Shown here one piece after another: positions 5,551-13,118 of a stretch of 64,000 bases of DNA. The stretch's first letter is position 1. The number at the start of each line of letters is the position of its first letter. This DNA is from Geosiphon pyriformis uo1. Its lineage: Eukaryota; Fungi; Glomeromycota. The stretch lies in the NCBI GenBank assembly GCA_016748015.1, contig JAAOMT010000495.1, positions 1 to 64,000 on the forward strand, given 5' to 3'. The notes below the pieces were generated by a model, which was not told where the DNA came from, did no database searches, and saw nothing but the letters and a program-made list of their open reading frames with translations. A program made the translations under genes and the position numbers.

Positions 5551-6516
5551 TCTTTATATATAAATAAAATATATTATTGTTTTATTTTGTATTAAGCATT
5601 TATAATTAACGTACAAATTTATTTTAGAAAGAAATTATTGATCTGATTATTAACCCAATAATTAACTATTTACCAAACTAGTTATTCAATCTTTGCAAAG
5701 CTACCAAAATACATTCATTTTTTTAAATAGATTGAAGTTTATGAACAGATTAATTGATATAAATTTCTGAATTATAAAATTTTAGATTGAAAATAATATG
5801 ATCAAATTTGTGCTGTGCACATCTTGAGAGAATTTTTTTTAATTGGCCGATTGGTTTTTATGAGATATTAAAAATATTCGGATTAAATTAAATTTATGTT
5901 CTCTGTAACAAACGGGACTGATGAGAATTATTTAAATAGCTATTCATCTAATTTACACAAAGGTAAGTCATTTCTAACAAATGTTATTATTATCGGAAAA
6001 CAAAGTGTGCATATTTTGGGAAAGCAGTAGATACTCAAATTACTTGAATCTTGTCAAAATTGATAAATATTTTCCATAAAAACGTTGCCATTTTTGTAGT
6101 TATTCACATTTTACTTTTTGTAAAGAATGATTTTTATTCTTTCATAATAAAATAATTTATTAATTAATTTAAAGATTTCTAAATTTTAAAGCAAACCAAA
6201 ATTAATCAAAATAGTTTAAAATCTAAAGTTTTTTGCCACTCGCATCACAATTATATCTTCATAACCGTCTTTATCAATAAGTAGTAAAGAATCTGAGGTA
6301 AAACTTGTCAGATCAAATTATGGATGATTCAAATTTAGAAATGTCAAATGTGGGTTTCTGTTAAAGTAAGAAGCAATAGTCTAGTAATCAGTCAAGGAAA
6401 AAATCTAAAATTATAAATACGCCAACTCAGTACATTTCATTATATTTCAAAAAGTATTTAAATTACAATTTATCATCGTCATCATCGTCATCATCAGCAT
6501 CATCGCTTTGTGAAAT

Positions 6517-6550
6517 GGGGCAGACTGCAACAAAACCAGACAAAGTGAAC
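6517..6550 (+). repeat. Left terminal inverted repeat
   Basis: Matches the reverse complement of 12845-12878 with 3 mismatches; preceded by AAAT. Confidence 0.92.
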
Positions 6551-7281
6551 ATTTTATAAATGAGAGGCTGATTATGATGTGCCAGAATGTGATGAATATA
6601 AATCATAGCATGATTAATATAGGGATATCTTTATATAAAAATAAAATATATGAAACTAATTTACCATGGAACCAAAGTATTACAGCACTATTAGAAGCAT
6701 TTTAAAGAATGAACAAGGAGAAAAAATTGCTCCATACGTTTTTAAAATGAATGACACCCAAACTCTCCAGGATCACCTATGAAATTTATCGAGAAGAACG
6801 AAAAATAATAAACCATAAACGAACATTAACCTCAACTTATGATGAACCAAGAAAGAAACGAAGCTAGAGACATAAAGTAAATATCTGTTTCTTTATAATT
6901 ATCGATAATCAGATGATTCTTTATATACTGTTCGAGTAAGAATAGCAATAAATACGATAATTTTGGTTCGCTGTGCCCCAAGTACTACAAATCCGACACA
7001 ATTTATGACCAGCAAAACCTGTATCTTTTTAGAAACAATGGGTATTAAAGGTAATAAAACGGAAACACAGAAGCCGTTTGATCGGTAAATCAACTGTTTC
7101 AAGTCCATGTTATGATGTATGTTTAATGAACGCTTATAATTTTGAAATTGGTATAAAACCAGCACCATTTCACCCACGTTTTCGCTTAAAAAAACAAATT
7201 ACAATAGATCAAATTGCAATCTGCATTTATCGAAAGCATAATTTCATAATCTACAAAAATCAAATAACAATCCCACTCAAA

Positions 7282-7761
7282 ATGTTCACTTTCGCTATTG
7301 AAACCTTCTGCGAGTTACTGCTGCTGATCACGCTTATTGCTGGCACTTCTCTCTACCATAAAACTCACAATCAAGTCCGAATTATAACTCAAATGCTTTT
7401 TCAAGCGACAGAATCAAGGACAATTGAGTCTAAACCCATTAATCGAAATTATTTATCAAACATAACGCATTTATGGGAATATCTCAATAAGTTATTTGAT
7501 AGAAATTCTGAGCTGGACTCAGTATTATTCAACAAAGTTGTCATAAAACTCCGTAAACTATGCGAAAGAAAAGGCATTATCGCCTTCATTCTAAAAGGCC
7601 TTTGCCAGGAAAAAAGCCAATTCTCGAGAAAAACAATCGAAGCGCTTGAAAAATGGGTAGATAAAGAAAGGGGGAGGAGAAACATAGACTTTAATAACAT
7701 TTATAATAACAATACATGGCATAAATTTCACCAGAGCGACCAAAGTATAGGGGAGCAATAG
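7282..7761 (+). CDS. Hypothetical protein inside the transposon, N-terminal hydrophobic segment
   Basis: ATG 7282 MFTFAIETFCELLLLITLIAGTSL..., 159 aa within a 227-codon open frame; no family recognised. Confidence 0.35.
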   Translation: MFTFAIETFCELLLLITLIAGTSLYHKTHNQVRIITQMLFQATESRTIESKPINRNYLSNITHLWEYLNKLFDRNSELDSVLFNKVVIKLRKLCERKGIIAFILKGLCQEKSQFSRKTIEALEKWVDKERGRRNIDFNNIYNNNTWHKFHQSDQSIGEQ

Positions 7762-7856
7762 TTACATTGTAAAAAGGTCAAGCCACTGATCGGCGTTTGT
7801 ATATAGATCTCATCGCGCAGCAACATCTTCCCATCGAAACCAAAACAAAAACCACC

Positions 7857-10164
7857 ATGACTACGCTTGAGTACTACCAGCAACAACTGGAGAAGGCAGA
7901 GAAGAAGCTGGATGAGGCGAGCGCGGCGTTGAAGAGTTTTCAGGAGTTGAAATACGGAGGAATAAAACTAGAAGAGTTGAGAGACAAGGAGGACCTCATG
8001 GTAAAGGAGAAGGCTACGCTGGAGAGGCTGACGAAGAAAGAGGCAGATCTGGAGAACGCCGTGAAGGAGTGTAGAGAGGTGTGGATTAAGCGTGATAACG
8101 ACTTGCGGCAGGCGCGTACAGAATCTCAGACAGGTAACGACTTTGTGACTCGGGCGTTGGGGACGTAGAGTAGTGTGTACATAGGGTAGAGTGGGGACGT
8201 ACTGCTTTTTCGCCGTTACTTTTTAACGTGTGCATCACCCTATTTCCATTTTATTCAAAACATTTCATTCCATTAAATCTTCCATACACTCTCTTATTGT
8301 TTACACCTTGTAATGTTATTCAACGCTTTATTTAATCTTTTTTTATAATTTTATTACGAGTTTGGGTATTTGCTATCCTGTTGCGCATTGACTAACTTGT
8401 ACTTTCCCCTTTCAAACTGCTTTGATTTGCTTCAGCAAATAAGCGTCCCTATGAAAAAAGTAAGTTACAGAGGAGTGGGTTGTTAGTTATTATTACCTAA
8501 TTATAATCTTATTTCCTGCATACAAACTATAGTTGATGCTAGTGCACAGGTCCTTGATAGGTTAAGGAAAAGGGCTAAGCCATCGCTCCCGGATTCTGAC
8601 GAACTTGCTACATTCCTCGAACAATCTCTCACGAATGACATAAAGGTTCCCCTTCTTAGGGATGAGTTTGACACCTTCCTCGTATCTGGTTATCAAGATC
8701 CGTGCACGGCTGAAGACCTAGAGATCCTATTCCGTGTCAGCGACACTGAGAGTGCTTATACTTTCGTCACTGGTGTGCTTGGGTCTGCAATTATGACCCC
8801 CTCGCCTCCGCTTGATGGGACTAAGTATTCATTTGTCACATTTTGGGACACCAATATTCGAAGATTTCTTGAGACTTTCTTTTCAAGTGGTCATTCCGTC
8901 CGAAATACAAACCAACGCATGATCTCTAATAACATGCGCCCAGACTTTGGTTTCATTCTCAACCGAGTATCCCCATTTAGGGGGGAGGAAAAGGCTCCTC
9001 ATAGCAGGGAAGAGGCGTGGACTGAGCTCGTGGATAAAATTCAATGGACTTATGATCCAGCTCCTTATGTCTTGGGTAAGTCTTTAGTTTTTATTCTGTT
9101 GGTCATTTGATTGGTTAACAAATGTAGTCTTCTTCTTTTGCAGGTTACTATGCTATTGGACCATCATTAACCTATGTTGCTCTTTGCCGGCCGCGACTTG
9201 GAAGTTATAAGCCAGATATTATCCCCATTGGAACCGTTGATTTGAGTCTGAGGAAAGAACGTATCCGTAATTTGCGAATACTCATAAATTTATGCACTAT
9301 CATTGAGCTGGTTCAGGATGTAATAGTGTGGCGCGAAACTACAGAGTTCGTCCCTATTGAGAGGTGCGTTGAGGAATTTGTTATGACAAGCTTTATATTC
9401 TAGTCTAACGGTGTATATTTCTTGCTGAGAAAATAAAACAATTTGTGTAACTGGCACATGCATCAAAAAGACTTACCATGGTCCAGATGGTGAACAGTGC
9501 ACCCAAAAACTCCGGAACATCTATAATATGCTCAAAAATGAACATGTGCCAAATGTTGATAATCTCATTCTTTCATATACAGATAATGATCATGGATGTG
9601 TAGCATATCTTGCACCCAAAGGAATGAGTGTTAGACCGAATACGCAGAAGGAGTTGCTGGAAGCTATTATTTGCGTCCTCGAGGCACTGAGCGTGAGTAT
9701 TGTGGAACTACCAACAAATATTTCTACAGTCAGTAGCTCATCCATGTTTTTTAATATAGGTTATGCATGAAGCTGAGACACCTATCTTTCATAGAGATAT
9801 AAGGTGGCAAAATATAATACAATTGCATGGGTCACAATGGATGCTAATTGACTGGGATGATGCTTCCAGTATGTCTACCCGTGCTGCATCACATCTTGAA
9901 CGTGCAAACCATGCACCTGAAGTGTTTAATGATTATCATAAAGGGGAAGTTGACATTTGGAGTGCGGGAAAGCTAATAAGAGATGCAGCTGTATGGATTC
10001 TCGACCTCTCAGCTGATGTTGTGGAAAGAGGCAGATGGATGCGGGAAACAAAACCGAGACCAACTGCTGCTGATGCTTTGAAAGCAATACAGGATGTTTA
10101 TAGGACAATGTGTGATCAATTACGTGCTACTGCTAAACATAAAGTCAATAAAATTTATATATAG
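7857..10164 (+). CDS. Crinkler (CRN)-type coiled-coil + PD-(D/E)XK REase-like + protein-kinase-fold gene, 6 exons; one acceptor may be damaged
   Basis: ACCACCATG start. Exons ~7857-8133, 8436-8459, 8533-9075, 9144-9363, ~9428-9692 and 9761-10164. Motifs RPDFGF..FRGEEK, WTYDPAPYVLGYYA, HRDIRWQN, LIDWDDA, HAPE, DIWSAG, RPTA. The acceptor before exon 5 reads CTG instead of YAG in the needed phase. Confidence 0.8.
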
Positions 10165-10176
10165 GAATACCCGTAT

Positions 10177-11870
10177 ATGAAAAATTCTAATTATAATGGT
10201 TCGACTGAATATGAAAAAGCCATGCGTTTCTTGGAGATAGGTTGCAATTGTGGTTGCTCAAGAAAGATTACAAGAGAAAAGTTTGCCGAATTACGTGAGG
10301 CGTTTCAAGCTCTCTCTAGATCTGAACAAGACATATTTTTAATGGCCCAACTGAAAGCAATGAATGGTGGAGAAATAACTGCCAGCCGACGTTTTAAAAA
10401 GAAAACGCGTACTAATAAGAGAACTTTTTACTACTGAGGTTGCAATATGCCCCTTTGTCAGAAAACATATCTCAATATGTTGGGAATTGGTCGTACTCAC
10501 TTCGAAAACGTCAGAAATCATCTGGCAACGAATGGTGTAATACCACGCGTTCATGGTAATGTAAAAAAAGTGCCACGATGGAAAACCAAAATAATCATTG
10601 ATATAACTGTTGCTACCGCTGTGAAGAATTTTTTCGAAAACTATGCTGAAATCAATGGATTACCAAGTCCCGGTAGAAATGTCAATCGCATTACTCAATC
10701 GCTTACACTCTTGCCAGCCGAAACGAGTTACAAATCAATCTATCGTGATTTTATTGCAGGTCTCGAAATTGATAGCACATTGAAATTGTTAAAATATGAT
10801 GCATTCCGCAAGTTATGACATCAACTAACGCCTTACATTCAAATCATGAGTCCAAGAACGGATTTATGTGATACATGTCAACGGTTTCGGAATGACTTAC
10901 AGTATAATGCTCGTAAGGAAGAGGAGGCAAGAGATTTGTTGAAAAAATACAAAGAACATTTAGTTAAGGCTAAATTAGAGAGAAATTATTACAACAAAAA
11001 TACGAGATTAGCAGAACAGCAGAGAAAATTGGTAGATGAGCATTTTATAACAAGAGGTAAAGCTCATTCTGATCAACAGGTAAGTAAAATTTATTATCTT
11101 AGTCCACGTAAAGTGCATTTATTTGGTATTCAAGATGAGGCGGTACGCGAACAAATTAATTACGTTCTTGATGAAGACGAAATTATCGGCAAAGGTCCTA
11201 ATGGCACACTGAGCATGGTATTCGATGGAATTAAGAAATTGAATAAAGGTGAAAAGTATTTAAAGATTACTTGCGATAATGCAGGAGGACAGTATAAAAA
11301 TAATGCTACCATTTGATTTATCTGTATTTGGTAATTTGTGGTTATTATGAAAGTATCGAATTAAATTTTATGGTACCTGGACATACTAAATTCAAGTGTG
11401 ATGGCAGTTTTGGATTGATTAAGAAACTATACCGCAAAACGACTGTAAATTGTGTGGATCATGTGATCGAAGTAGTAAAAAAGTCTAGTGTTGCCAGACT
11501 AAATAAAGCGCGGCGCTATAATGATGGAGCCGGCTTTCAATATTTTGACATCATAAGTGGTCTGGAAGCTTATTTTAAAAAACTACCCGGTCTACAAAAG
11601 TTTCAACATTTTCTTTTTACCAGGGCCAACCCTGGTGTGGTCAAAGTCCAAGAATTCGCTAATGGTCCTTTCCAGGAATTCAGACTTTTAAAAATTGGCA
11701 AACCCGATGCTTCGAAGAGTAAAGAAAAAATCAATGCCTTGTCATTTTTCGTGCTAGTGCCTCCTCCTATGAAGTATGAAAGGCAAGAATACCTTTATAA
11801 TTATATTCGGCCTTTTGTCAAGGATGCTTTTAAAGATGTCACTTGCCCAAAACCATTGAACGGATGTTAA
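10177..11870 (+). pseudogene. Sola-family DDD transposase, continuous if TGA=Trp (code 4); one frameshift and a probable internal deletion
   Basis: ORFs 10177-10437, 10447-10818 and 10846-11316 share one frame and are separated only by TGA (FYY*GC, FRKL*HQL, NATI*F). A 1-nt shift at ~11317 leads into 11313-11870. Motifs GCNCGC, PRVHGN, PRTDLCDTC, YYLSPRKVHLFGI, DNAGGQYKN, FMVPGHTKFKCDGSFG, RQEYLYNYIRPF..CPKP. No introns. Confidence 0.85.
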
Positions 11871-11880
11871 AAATAAAATT

Positions 11881-12818
11881 ATGTCTAGCCAAAATTACAT
11901 TAACTGCCTCCACTGCTTAATTAAGCAAATCAGCCAAAAAATCGTCCGATCAAAGTGATTGCTGACTGGGATGAGGTTTTGTTTCCCTTCCGTCCGAGGT
12001 GTAACTATAAATTTGGTGGATTGACTATTTCTTTTGAGAAATTTTTGAGAAAGAGCCAAGATAACTAGCTCTAGTTTAGATGGTAACGTAATGACTGCTT
12101 ACGAAGGATCAAATAAGAAACTAATATTTTCTGATGCTACTGACGAAGAAAAACAAGCTGCTCTAACTTACTCCAAATTACAAAGTGAAAGAAGAAAGCA
12201 TCCAGAAAAAGAGACCCTAGGTGTTGAGAGCTTACTGAAGCAGCTTCTGGACCTGACACTCCTTTTCTTTCTCCAGCTAAAGAAATTCTGCTAGCTTTAC
12301 AACAAGGCTTAATCAGTGAGTTATTGGTTCTAAGCACCACTCTTACTAACTGGGATGAAAGAAAAAAAACTTGATCTGGTGAAAAGCCAGCAGTAGTGAA
12401 AGCCAAAGAAAGCAGATTTGCTAAAAGCTTTGCTAGCTTCCCACAGTGCATGATTGATATTATATACGTTAAAAAGATTGGTAACGAAAACAAACCCCAT
12501 CGTTGAGAATGAATAAGAGATAATCATCCTGATTTTGATTGATTTATTTATTGATGATAACCATGCTTTAATTACTTCTACCCGTGACCATTTAGGACCC
12601 GGTAAGTATTATGCCATGCCGGATTACAAGTGCGTCGGCATATTCAAAACCTCAGTAAGTGATCTTAAGGATGAAGATTTTGTCAGAGTATAAACAAAAG
12701 ATTAATTTGAAAGATGGAAAAAATAATGAGCAGTTATGCTTTTGGCTTAATTACCCCAATTATTTTATACGGAGGATATTGGATCATTAAAAAATCACAT
12801 GAAAAACGGAAAAAGTAA
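11881..12818 (+). pseudogene. Bacterial-style HAD-fold-like gene with C-terminal TM anchor, TGA=Trp, frameshifted; probable Mollicutes-related endobacterium origin
   Basis: ATG lies 10 nt after the transposase stop. Reconstructed: MSSQNYINCLHCLIKQISQK/NRPIKVIADWDEVLFP...F*ERAKIT...TPFLSPAKEILLALQQGLISELLVLST...PHR*E*IRDNHPDFD/LFIDDN...YAMPDYKC..KTSVSDLKDEDF...YAFGLITPIILYGGYWIIKKSHEKRKK*. HAD motif I (DxD) and motif IV (hhIDD) are present. In-frame TGA at 12046, 12225, 12372, 12504 and 12510. Confidence 0.7.
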
Positions 12819-12844: not shown

Positions 12845-12878
12845 GTTCACTTTGTCTGGTTTTGTTGCAGCACGCCCC
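12845..12878 (-). repeat. Right terminal inverted repeat
   Basis: GTTCACTTTGTCTGGTTTTGTTGCAGCACGCCCC followed by AAAT. Confidence 0.92.
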
Positions 12879-13047
12879 AAATTTAAACAATTAGCTTGAA
12901 TTAAAATATCTGATTGTGGAAGAGTGATTATAATATATGATAAACATCAAAATCAGTTGTGACAAATAAAATTGGCCTTTGTTAAAATATATTTTTCTCA
13001 ATATATATGATACCATATACAGGGTATTTGATAAAAGATACTCCTCT

Positions 13048-13118
13048 TGCGTATGCTGGGAATCGAACCCAGGTCTACCGCGTGGCAGGCGGTAATTATA
13101 CCACTAAACCACATACGC
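13048..13118 (-). tRNA. tRNA-Gly (GCC), intronless, no encoded CCA
   Basis: Minus strand GCGTATGTGGTTTAGTGGTATAATTACCGCCTGCCACGCGGTAGACCTGGGTTCGATTCCCAGCATACGCA. Acceptor stem GCGTATG/CATACGC, anticodon stem ACCGC/GCGGT with GCC, T-loop TTCGATT, short TTTT tract downstream. Confidence 0.97.

Follow-up and report, generated by a model that had tools for sequence, protein, structure and literature searches.

A family of DNA transposons in the nuclear genome of the fungus Geosiphon pyriformis appears to write most of its tryptophan codons as TGA, and its sister lineage lies in the chromosomes of Mollicutes-related endobacteria (MRE), which use genetic code 4. The stretch analyzed here, referred to as the window, is 64,000 nucleotides (nt) long (C618:1-64000 of the 128-Mb Geosiphon genome) and carries one dead copy of the family's transposase gene at 10177-11870. 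Read in the frame common to the family, this copy has no stop other than three TGAs, and these stand at Trp sites, as would be expected if the family's genes were meant to be translated with TGA as Trp.

Codons at the tryptophan sites of the family

The Geosiphon genome holds at least 40 copies of the transposase, at 70-92% nt identity, and one fragment of the family is identical to the NCBI protein KAG9283966.1 of G. pyriformis. A codon census was made over 119 copies, comprising 39 from Geosiphon and 80 relatives from soil metagenomes with 56-97% protein identity to copy L035. Five Trp sites were followed, designated in gene order W1, Wb, W2, W4 and W3, with the following counts.

Trp sites, 39 Geosiphon copies: TGA 93, TGG 59, TAA 11, TAG 0
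Other codons, 39 Geosiphon copies (stops from decay): TGA 16, TAA 37, TAG 15
Trp sites, 80 soil-metagenome relatives: TGA 206, TGG 104, TAA 0, TAG 0

Over all 119 copies the five sites are TGA 299 times and TGG 163 times and never TAG; every site alternates, and each of the five is TGG in some family members. Among 12 distant homologues, the W2 column is Trp in ten and the W3 column in three, W4 is F, Y or W, Wb is variable, and W1 is hydrophobic or aromatic (F, I, Y, H, V). An earlier note, made from the letters of the window, had placed at least two of its TGAs at Trp positions (FRKL-W-HQL and NNxxI-W, here W2 and W3), and these columns agree with it. Its view that the TGAs are Trp codons rather than products of decay is likewise upheld by the alternation of TGA with TGG, the lack of TAG and the strong purifying selection described below.

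Pairwise Nei-Gojobori ratios of nonsynonymous to synonymous divergence (dN/dS) between copies are 0.05-0.17, with dS from 0.3 to saturation (above 2); ratios of 0.3-0.46 were obtained for two heavily decayed copies only. In L035 and L036 a single frame of ∼575 codons is interrupted solely by TGA, three times and at Trp sites, and L037 and L038 come close to this. One frame with TGA read through is retained by 20 of 29 full-length soil copies and, among the Geosiphon copies that reach 500 codons, by 6 of 23. Since dN/dS is this low and frames of ∼575 codons are broken by TGA only, TGA evidently stands for an amino acid wherever selection acts on the family. Comparison of the copies shows TGA and TGG to be interchangeable at all five Trp sites, with strong purifying selection across the TGA codons. 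No near-identical copies were found (the nearest neighbor of L035 is 88% identical), and the copies therefore represent not a single burst but a sample of numerous lineages whose divergence took place under selection. Masked runs of N in L031-L034 (C692:1346000, C692:1129000, C596:345500 and C692:520500) produce false frames of 600-1,180 amino acids (aa), and open frames of 1,000 aa or more at C692 and C596 were discarded as artefacts of this kind.

The decayed old copies L025 (C512) and L039 (C634) have a GC content of 17-22% and a CpG observed/expected ratio of 0.09-0.32, and in them TGA at Trp sites has become TAA. These values indicate strong C-to-T decay of Geosiphon repeats, resembling methylation-driven decay or repeat-induced point mutation. 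Host genes appear to be read in the standard code, because the host tubulin exons are without internal stops and the kinase-like cargo gene of the window element uses TGG only.

Relatives in endobacteria and in fungi

A search with P0212, a full-length protein of the TGA-spelled clade called by the Joint Genome Institute (JGI), returned fragments in Ambispora leptoticha, Diversispora eburnea and Gigaspora rosea, and also matched P0270, a protein annotated as Candidatus Moeniiplasma glomeromycotorum. P0270 lies among restriction-modification genes on 125-kb contigs of two metagenome-assembled genomes (MAGs; L186/L187), and the soil contigs L047, L165 and L166 fall in its clade. In a careful maximum-likelihood (ML) tree rooted on Desulfobacterales, support is 98/91 for a clade of full-length Glomeromycotina proteins, 100/99 for the MRE clade and 99/99 for the nuclear-type TGA clade. 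The MRE and nuclear-type clades join each other at 100/97, the Glomeromycotina clade branches outside this pair and Desulfobacterales farther out; the tree thus shows the TGA-spelled nuclear lineage as the sister of a clade found in chromosomes of MRE. In the nuclear-type clade, copies from Geosiphon are intermingled with those from soil, Ambispora, Diversispora and Gigaspora rosea, which points to horizontal spread among hosts. Two very similar fragments, P0256 of A. leptoticha and P0265 of D. eburnea, come from distant orders and group on short branches with 100/100 support; their likeness suggests recent horizontal spread, shared endobacteria or contamination of the assemblies.

The MRE clade has features of its own. 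The same three-gene element occurs in L165 and L166, adjoining PemK/MazF and GmrSD_N genes, with terminal inverted repeats (TIRs) ∼70% like the nuclear ones, the target-site duplication (TSD) ATAT, and left flanks that differ (PemK in L165, GmrSD_N in L166). No TIR of the nuclear family was found in L047 or L186. Long open reading frames (ORFs) of the MRE MAG locus contain 72 TGA and 23 TGG. In three independent sequences of this clade (L166:1560-1640, L047:1180-1260 and L186:9990-10080) the transposase occupies two overlapping frames that join at an A9-A10 tract, a junction that looks like the programmed frameshifting or transcriptional slippage of bacterial insertion sequences. Together with the TIRs, the TSD and the bacterial neighbors, it brings the MRE clade close to insertion sequences of the IS1/IS3 type with programmed frameshifts; the nuclear-type clade differs from these, its family frame being continuous, in the window copy as elsewhere, and free of an A9-A10 tract. 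Two eukaryote-like genes were also seen in endobacterial loci, one encoding a protein of 673 aa with leucine-rich repeats (LRR) and a Tyr/Ser-Thr kinase domain in TGA spelling (L186:18923-20944), the other an LRR and HET-domain protein with seven TGA and one TGG (L166:7965-9593).

Farther out, transposase relatives annotated at 530-660 aa, presumably of standard code, are present in Gigaspora, Rhizophagus, Glomus cerebriforme and other Glomeromycotina, and the closest relatives annotated at full length are DUF7869 proteins of Rhizophagus and Gigaspora. Bacterial DUF7869 relatives at 35-40% identity include at least six copies in the complete Desulfobacterium chromosome OY764894.2 (L050-L053, L071) and others in Desulfocicer vacuolatum DSM 3385 (L055), Thiomargarita (L068, L084) and further bacteria. 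Because genuine bacterial genomes contain such relatives in multiple copies, the family is not confined to eukaryotes; the label “eukaryote-type” given to the transposase in the earlier note fits its nearest full-length relatives, which are in Glomeromycotina nuclei, and does not fit the Desulfobacterium and Desulfocicer members. The 50 loci recovered in a scan of GTDB were from Desulfobacterales and other bacteria, with Mollicutes absent, and a scan with a narrower pattern was empty.

The window copy and its element

Features of the transposase gene in the window are as follows.

10148..10176, + strand: conserved block ATAAAATTTATATATAGG... upstream of the transposase; family homology begins ∼29 nt before the ATG
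10177..11870, + strand: transposase gene (DUF7869/Sola-like DDE), dead copy, from translations and Pfam; nearest copy L002, at 88% nt identity
10435..10437, + strand: TGA at Trp site W1; Geosiphon copies TGA 31, TGG 1, TAA 2; soil copies TGA 40, TGG 8
10579..10581, + strand: TGG at Trp site Wb (PR-W-KTK); the site is TGA in 10 Geosiphon and 29 soil copies
10816..10818, + strand: TGA at Trp site W2 (FRKL-W-HQL); Geosiphon copies TGG 25, TGA 9; Trp in 10/12 distant homologues
11065..11066, + strand: junction of a 66-nt in-frame deletion (22 codons), from the family alignment
11314..11316, + strand: TGA at Trp site W3 (NNATI-W-FYLYL); Geosiphon copies TGA 23, TGG 6; soil copies TGA 49, TGG 28
11317..11320, + strand: 1-nt deletion in a T run; TGA-TTTATC in the window, TGATTTTAYC in all other copies

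Reading from the ATG at 10177, one meets three stops upstream of 11317, each of them TGA and each at a site that is TGG in other copies. The earlier note had described three internal stops, all TGA, in a single frame. All are indeed TGA, but a single frame holds for the family and fails for the window copy, where the 1-nt deletion puts the last 185 codons (11313-11870) into another frame and the frame of the ATG meets TAA six codons past the third TGA. The suspected loss of the segment with the first catalytic Asp, at ITRGKA|HSDQQV, was confirmed by the 66 nt absent there relative to other family copies. The 22 deleted codons comprise this Asp and the fourth Trp site, W4, within a sequence that other copies retain (..DYCSVDATAHYSYD-W-AQNVHVP.., the ..HYSYD-W-AQNVHVP.. 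block); an intron at 11065/11066 was considered and rejected, since the extra nucleotides of the other copies are coding. The deletion of the catalytic Asp and the 1-nt frameshift make the window copy dead under any genetic code. Because W2 is mostly TGG in nuclear copies (25 versus 9), synonymous change and decay are indistinguishable for the W2 codon of the window. The Pfam DUF7869 profile (PF25273) matches the window at 11313-11867 with 36.6 bits (cut-off 26) and the C-terminal piece of L035 with 60.8 bits, also above the cut-off. Similarity among more than 20 copies, which differ farther upstream, begins abruptly at the block at 10148, for which we infer at most a possible promoter role.

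The element around the gene spans 6,362 bp with a GC content of 37.6% and is flanked by AT-rich fungal DNA of 22-26% GC. Its remaining features are listed here.

6513..6516, no strand: left TSD, AAAT; the same 4 nt lie beyond the right TIR
6517..6550, + strand: left TIR (GGGGCAGACTGC...GTGAAC); arms of 35 nt, 91% complementary to 12845-12879
7797..8168, + strand: cargo ORF, coiled-coil-like, without TGA, from the ORF list; no Pfam family
8775..10164, + strand: kinase-like cargo, split over at least two frames, Trp as TGG; Pkinase match at 9763-10161
11883..12690, + strand: second ORF, decayed, starting 13 nt past the transposase stop; from translations of the window, L002 and L010
12845..12878, - strand: right TIR, pairing with the left TIR; 34-35 nt
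12879..12882, no strand: right TSD, AAAT, matching the left TSD

TIR ends with three or fewer mismatches were found 40 times in the genome, compared with 0 in the control. Five other complete elements of 1.9-8.6 kb carry the TSD ATAT (four elements) or ATTT (one), and with TIRs and TSDs in six complete elements the insertions are true transpositions, made by a transposase, into fungal nuclear DNA. A 1,873-bp deletion derivative without transposase, L105 (G000:C787:141772-143644), has near-perfect TIRs and the TSD ATAT and is a non-autonomous member of the family. The superfamily of Sola DNA transposons, reportedly described by Bao and colleagues in 2009, is the nearest known class, the window element being of the DDE cut-and-paste kind with 34-35-nt TIRs and the 4-bp TSD typical of Sola1/2/3. 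The likeness is at the level of motifs (D in ..SYD.., DNxxGQNKN, GHTKF..D), and a Sola assignment, suggested by these motifs, the TIRs and the TSD, is tentative; unlike Sola, the family spells Trp as TGA in the transposase and in several accessory genes and has a sister clade in bacteria. Among fungi, Sola1 and Sola3 have been reported almost only from Rhizophagus (Muszewska et al. 2017, PMC5751038).

Of the cargo genes, the ORF at 7797-8168 shares its tail (..GNDFVTRALGT) with the soil element L159. The Pkinase match at 9763-10161 (E 1.3e-6) is under the Pfam cut-off, and the last kinase-like ORF (133 codons) has six TGG and zero TGA. An argument made previously, that decay had spared this adjacent kinase gene, is weak, the kinase-like cargo being itself broken across at least two frames. 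No Pfam match was obtained for the second ORF (11883-12690), and an NT5C-like identity for it was dropped as unsupported by Pfam; its ICD-W-DE site is TGG in L002 and TGA in L005 and L010, and an intact relative in L117 (10832-11779) has five TGA and no TGG. The nuclear and endobacterial clades share conserved accessory ORFs, namely a small ORF following the transposase, a coiled-coil protein and a Cys-rich protein. Those at window 11883-12690, L117:10832-11779 and 6170-7777 of the L101 element belong to no Pfam family and have TGA for nearly all Trp (TGA:TGG of, for example, 5:0 and 15:0), as AT-biased mutation would produce if TGA and TGG were truly equivalent. No tRNA genes were found in the 39 element loci; a tRNA-Gly(GCC) gene lies at 13048-13118 (- strand) of the window, ∼170 nt outside the right TIR.

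Possible sites of translation

On balance we consider it probable that the genes of the family were written for TGA as Trp, that the lineage was recoded in endobacteria, and that the nuclear clade is expressed there or depends on enzyme made there. An ancestral glomeromycotan element would have entered endobacteria and drifted to TGA there, and one branch would now reside in fungal nuclei, untranslatable in the cytosol and decaying. Unsampled endobacteria would then be the place where the nuclear-type clade is selected, and transposase may reach nuclear DNA from bacteria lying free in the cytoplasm. Endobacterial expression of the nuclear clade is the likeliest arrangement, and we infer that its nuclear copies would be supplied with enzyme in trans.

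Several observations weigh against this explanation. Bacterial contexts (the MAG contigs L186/L187 and the soil contigs L047, L165 and L166) yielded the sister clade only and no nuclear-type member, and the nuclear-type contexts that could be determined are all fungal-like (2-Mb Geosiphon contigs; a Crinkler neighbor in L188) or consist of sparse non-coding flanks. No endobacterial contigs were found in the Geosiphon assembly, where a search for bacterial 16S rRNA gave only matches of the size of eukaryotic small-subunit rRNA. The MRE clade differs from the nuclear-type clade in gene order, in ∼30% of the TIR and in its A9-A10 two-frame junction. Intact nuclear copies have 39-42% GC and a GC content at third codon positions (GC3) of 0.38-0.42, close to host coding GC3, and MRE copies lie below them at 32-33% GC and a GC3 of 0.22-0.29. 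In addition, TGG-only cargo inside the TIRs and genuine TSDs imply activity on nuclear DNA, for which transposase is needed in the nucleus, and the route from bacterium to nucleus is hypothetical.

Decoding by the host itself is the chief alternative, though a rather improbable one, in which the nuclear-type clade would be autonomous in the nucleus and the fungal cytoplasm would read UGA as Trp for transposon mRNAs. The reading might be done by a tRNA-Trp(UCA), either imported or a suppressor, by efficient readthrough, or after A-to-I editing had turned UGA into UGG, and it might be limited to some life stage. The nuclear-type clade is monophyletic and apart from the MRE clade, its known contexts are all fungal, its TSDs lie in nuclear DNA and its cargo is TGG-only, near-identical proteins occur in Ambispora and Diversispora assemblies, and its GC3 is like that of host genes, all of which host decoding would accommodate. 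Host genes, though, are read in the standard code, and the number of TGAs per gene, 3 to 15, together with the preference for TGA over TGG, fits neutral equivalence under a code-4 tRNA rather than leaky stops. A pattern search for nuclear tRNA(UCA) gave 17 matches against 17 in the control, none a tRNA, which counts weakly against host decoding as the control was itself without a clear tRNA-Trp(CCA). Editing of stop codons in mRNA is established in Sordariomycetes, where A-to-I changes act on UAG (e.g. PUK1 of Fusarium). The Geosiphon family resembles such genes in having in-frame stops at Trp codons under selection, and differs in that the codon is UGA, occurs up to 15 times per gene and is known from DNA alone; the Sordariomycetes type of editing is said to prefer UAG over UGA. 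A related proposal, somewhat less probable and in our judgment unlikely, is that the nuclear-type clade is autonomous and that the glomeromycotan cytoplasm, alone or with tRNA-Trp(UCA) leaked from wall-less endobacteria, decodes UGA as Trp.

Fungal mitochondria also use code 4, and copies derived from mitochondria and inserted in the nucleus would share that code; the ∼40% GC of intact copies is compatible with such an origin. We regard it as highly improbable, since the copies are insertions with TIRs and TSDs and not passive fragments, no mitochondrial genes were present on any of the 80 soil contigs examined, and the sister clade sits among bacterial restriction-modification and toxin-antitoxin genes. 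The least credible explanation is ordinary decay, in which the TGAs would be dead stops inherited from an amplified non-autonomous founder that had suffered TGG-to-TGA nonsense mutations. In its favor, only a simple transition separates TGG from TGA, the window copy and most Geosiphon copies are broken, and W2 is TGG in most copies. The founder model is nonetheless contradicted by a dN/dS of 0.05-0.17 over saturated dS, intact ∼575-codon frames in divergent copies, the lack of near-identical copies and hence of a burst, and 299 TGA without a single TAG at Trp sites although both TAG and TAA arise elsewhere in the gene.

Insertion of organellar or endosymbiont DNA by passive means, as in nuclear copies of mitochondrial DNA or Wolbachia-to-host transfer, would likewise place symbiont-style coding in a nuclear chromosome with decay after arrival; here the insertions are transposase-made, with TIRs and TSDs and no flanking bacterial DNA, and a passive origin is ruled out by the TIRs, the TSD and the AT-rich fungal flanks. 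Gene exchange between MRE and arbuscular mycorrhizal (AM) fungi is said to have been described in 2015 by Naito and colleagues and by Torres-Cortes and colleagues, with host genes acquired by the bacteria. The partners are the same here, and eukaryote-like genes are again found in endobacterial loci (the LRR-kinase of L186 and the LRR-HET protein of L166); the difference is that a mobile element in bacterial spelling occurs with TSDs at many sites of the host chromosomes. No description of nuclear transposons spelled with TGA as Trp was found in the literature on Geosiphon and Mollicutes or on endobacteria and transposases, and the literature on Sola1-3 led only to Muszewska et al. 2017.

The family would have been kept working in a code that its nucleus cannot read, either as an element commuting between endobacterium and host chromosome or through a hidden fungal reading of UGA, and both alternatives bear on the exchange of DNA between symbiont and host genomes. 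If the cytoplasm does decode UGA as Trp, a second genetic code would be conditionally active in a fungal cell, and if this depends on leaked tRNA-Trp(UCA), the transposon would be able to jump only in hosts that carry bacteria. Being widespread in soils and in several orders of AM fungi, the family may serve as a natural tracer of traffic from endobacterium to nucleus and of horizontal spread between hosts.

The flanks of soil copies were also inspected. No families were found in those of L159 and L155, and a search of the L112 flank in the Atlas gave no match. The L112 flank was set aside as a clue to the host, its neighboring genes recurring beside elements in L117 and in Geosiphon. These genes form a TGA-free ORF cluster at L112:3-4266 and L117:2-4132, which is decayed in Geosiphon (C714:1049486-1051064 and C555:125449-127005). 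In L112 the GC content reaches 45-53%, and one ORF of the cluster has a weak match to a Cas12f1-like TNB domain of the TnpB/Fanzor type.

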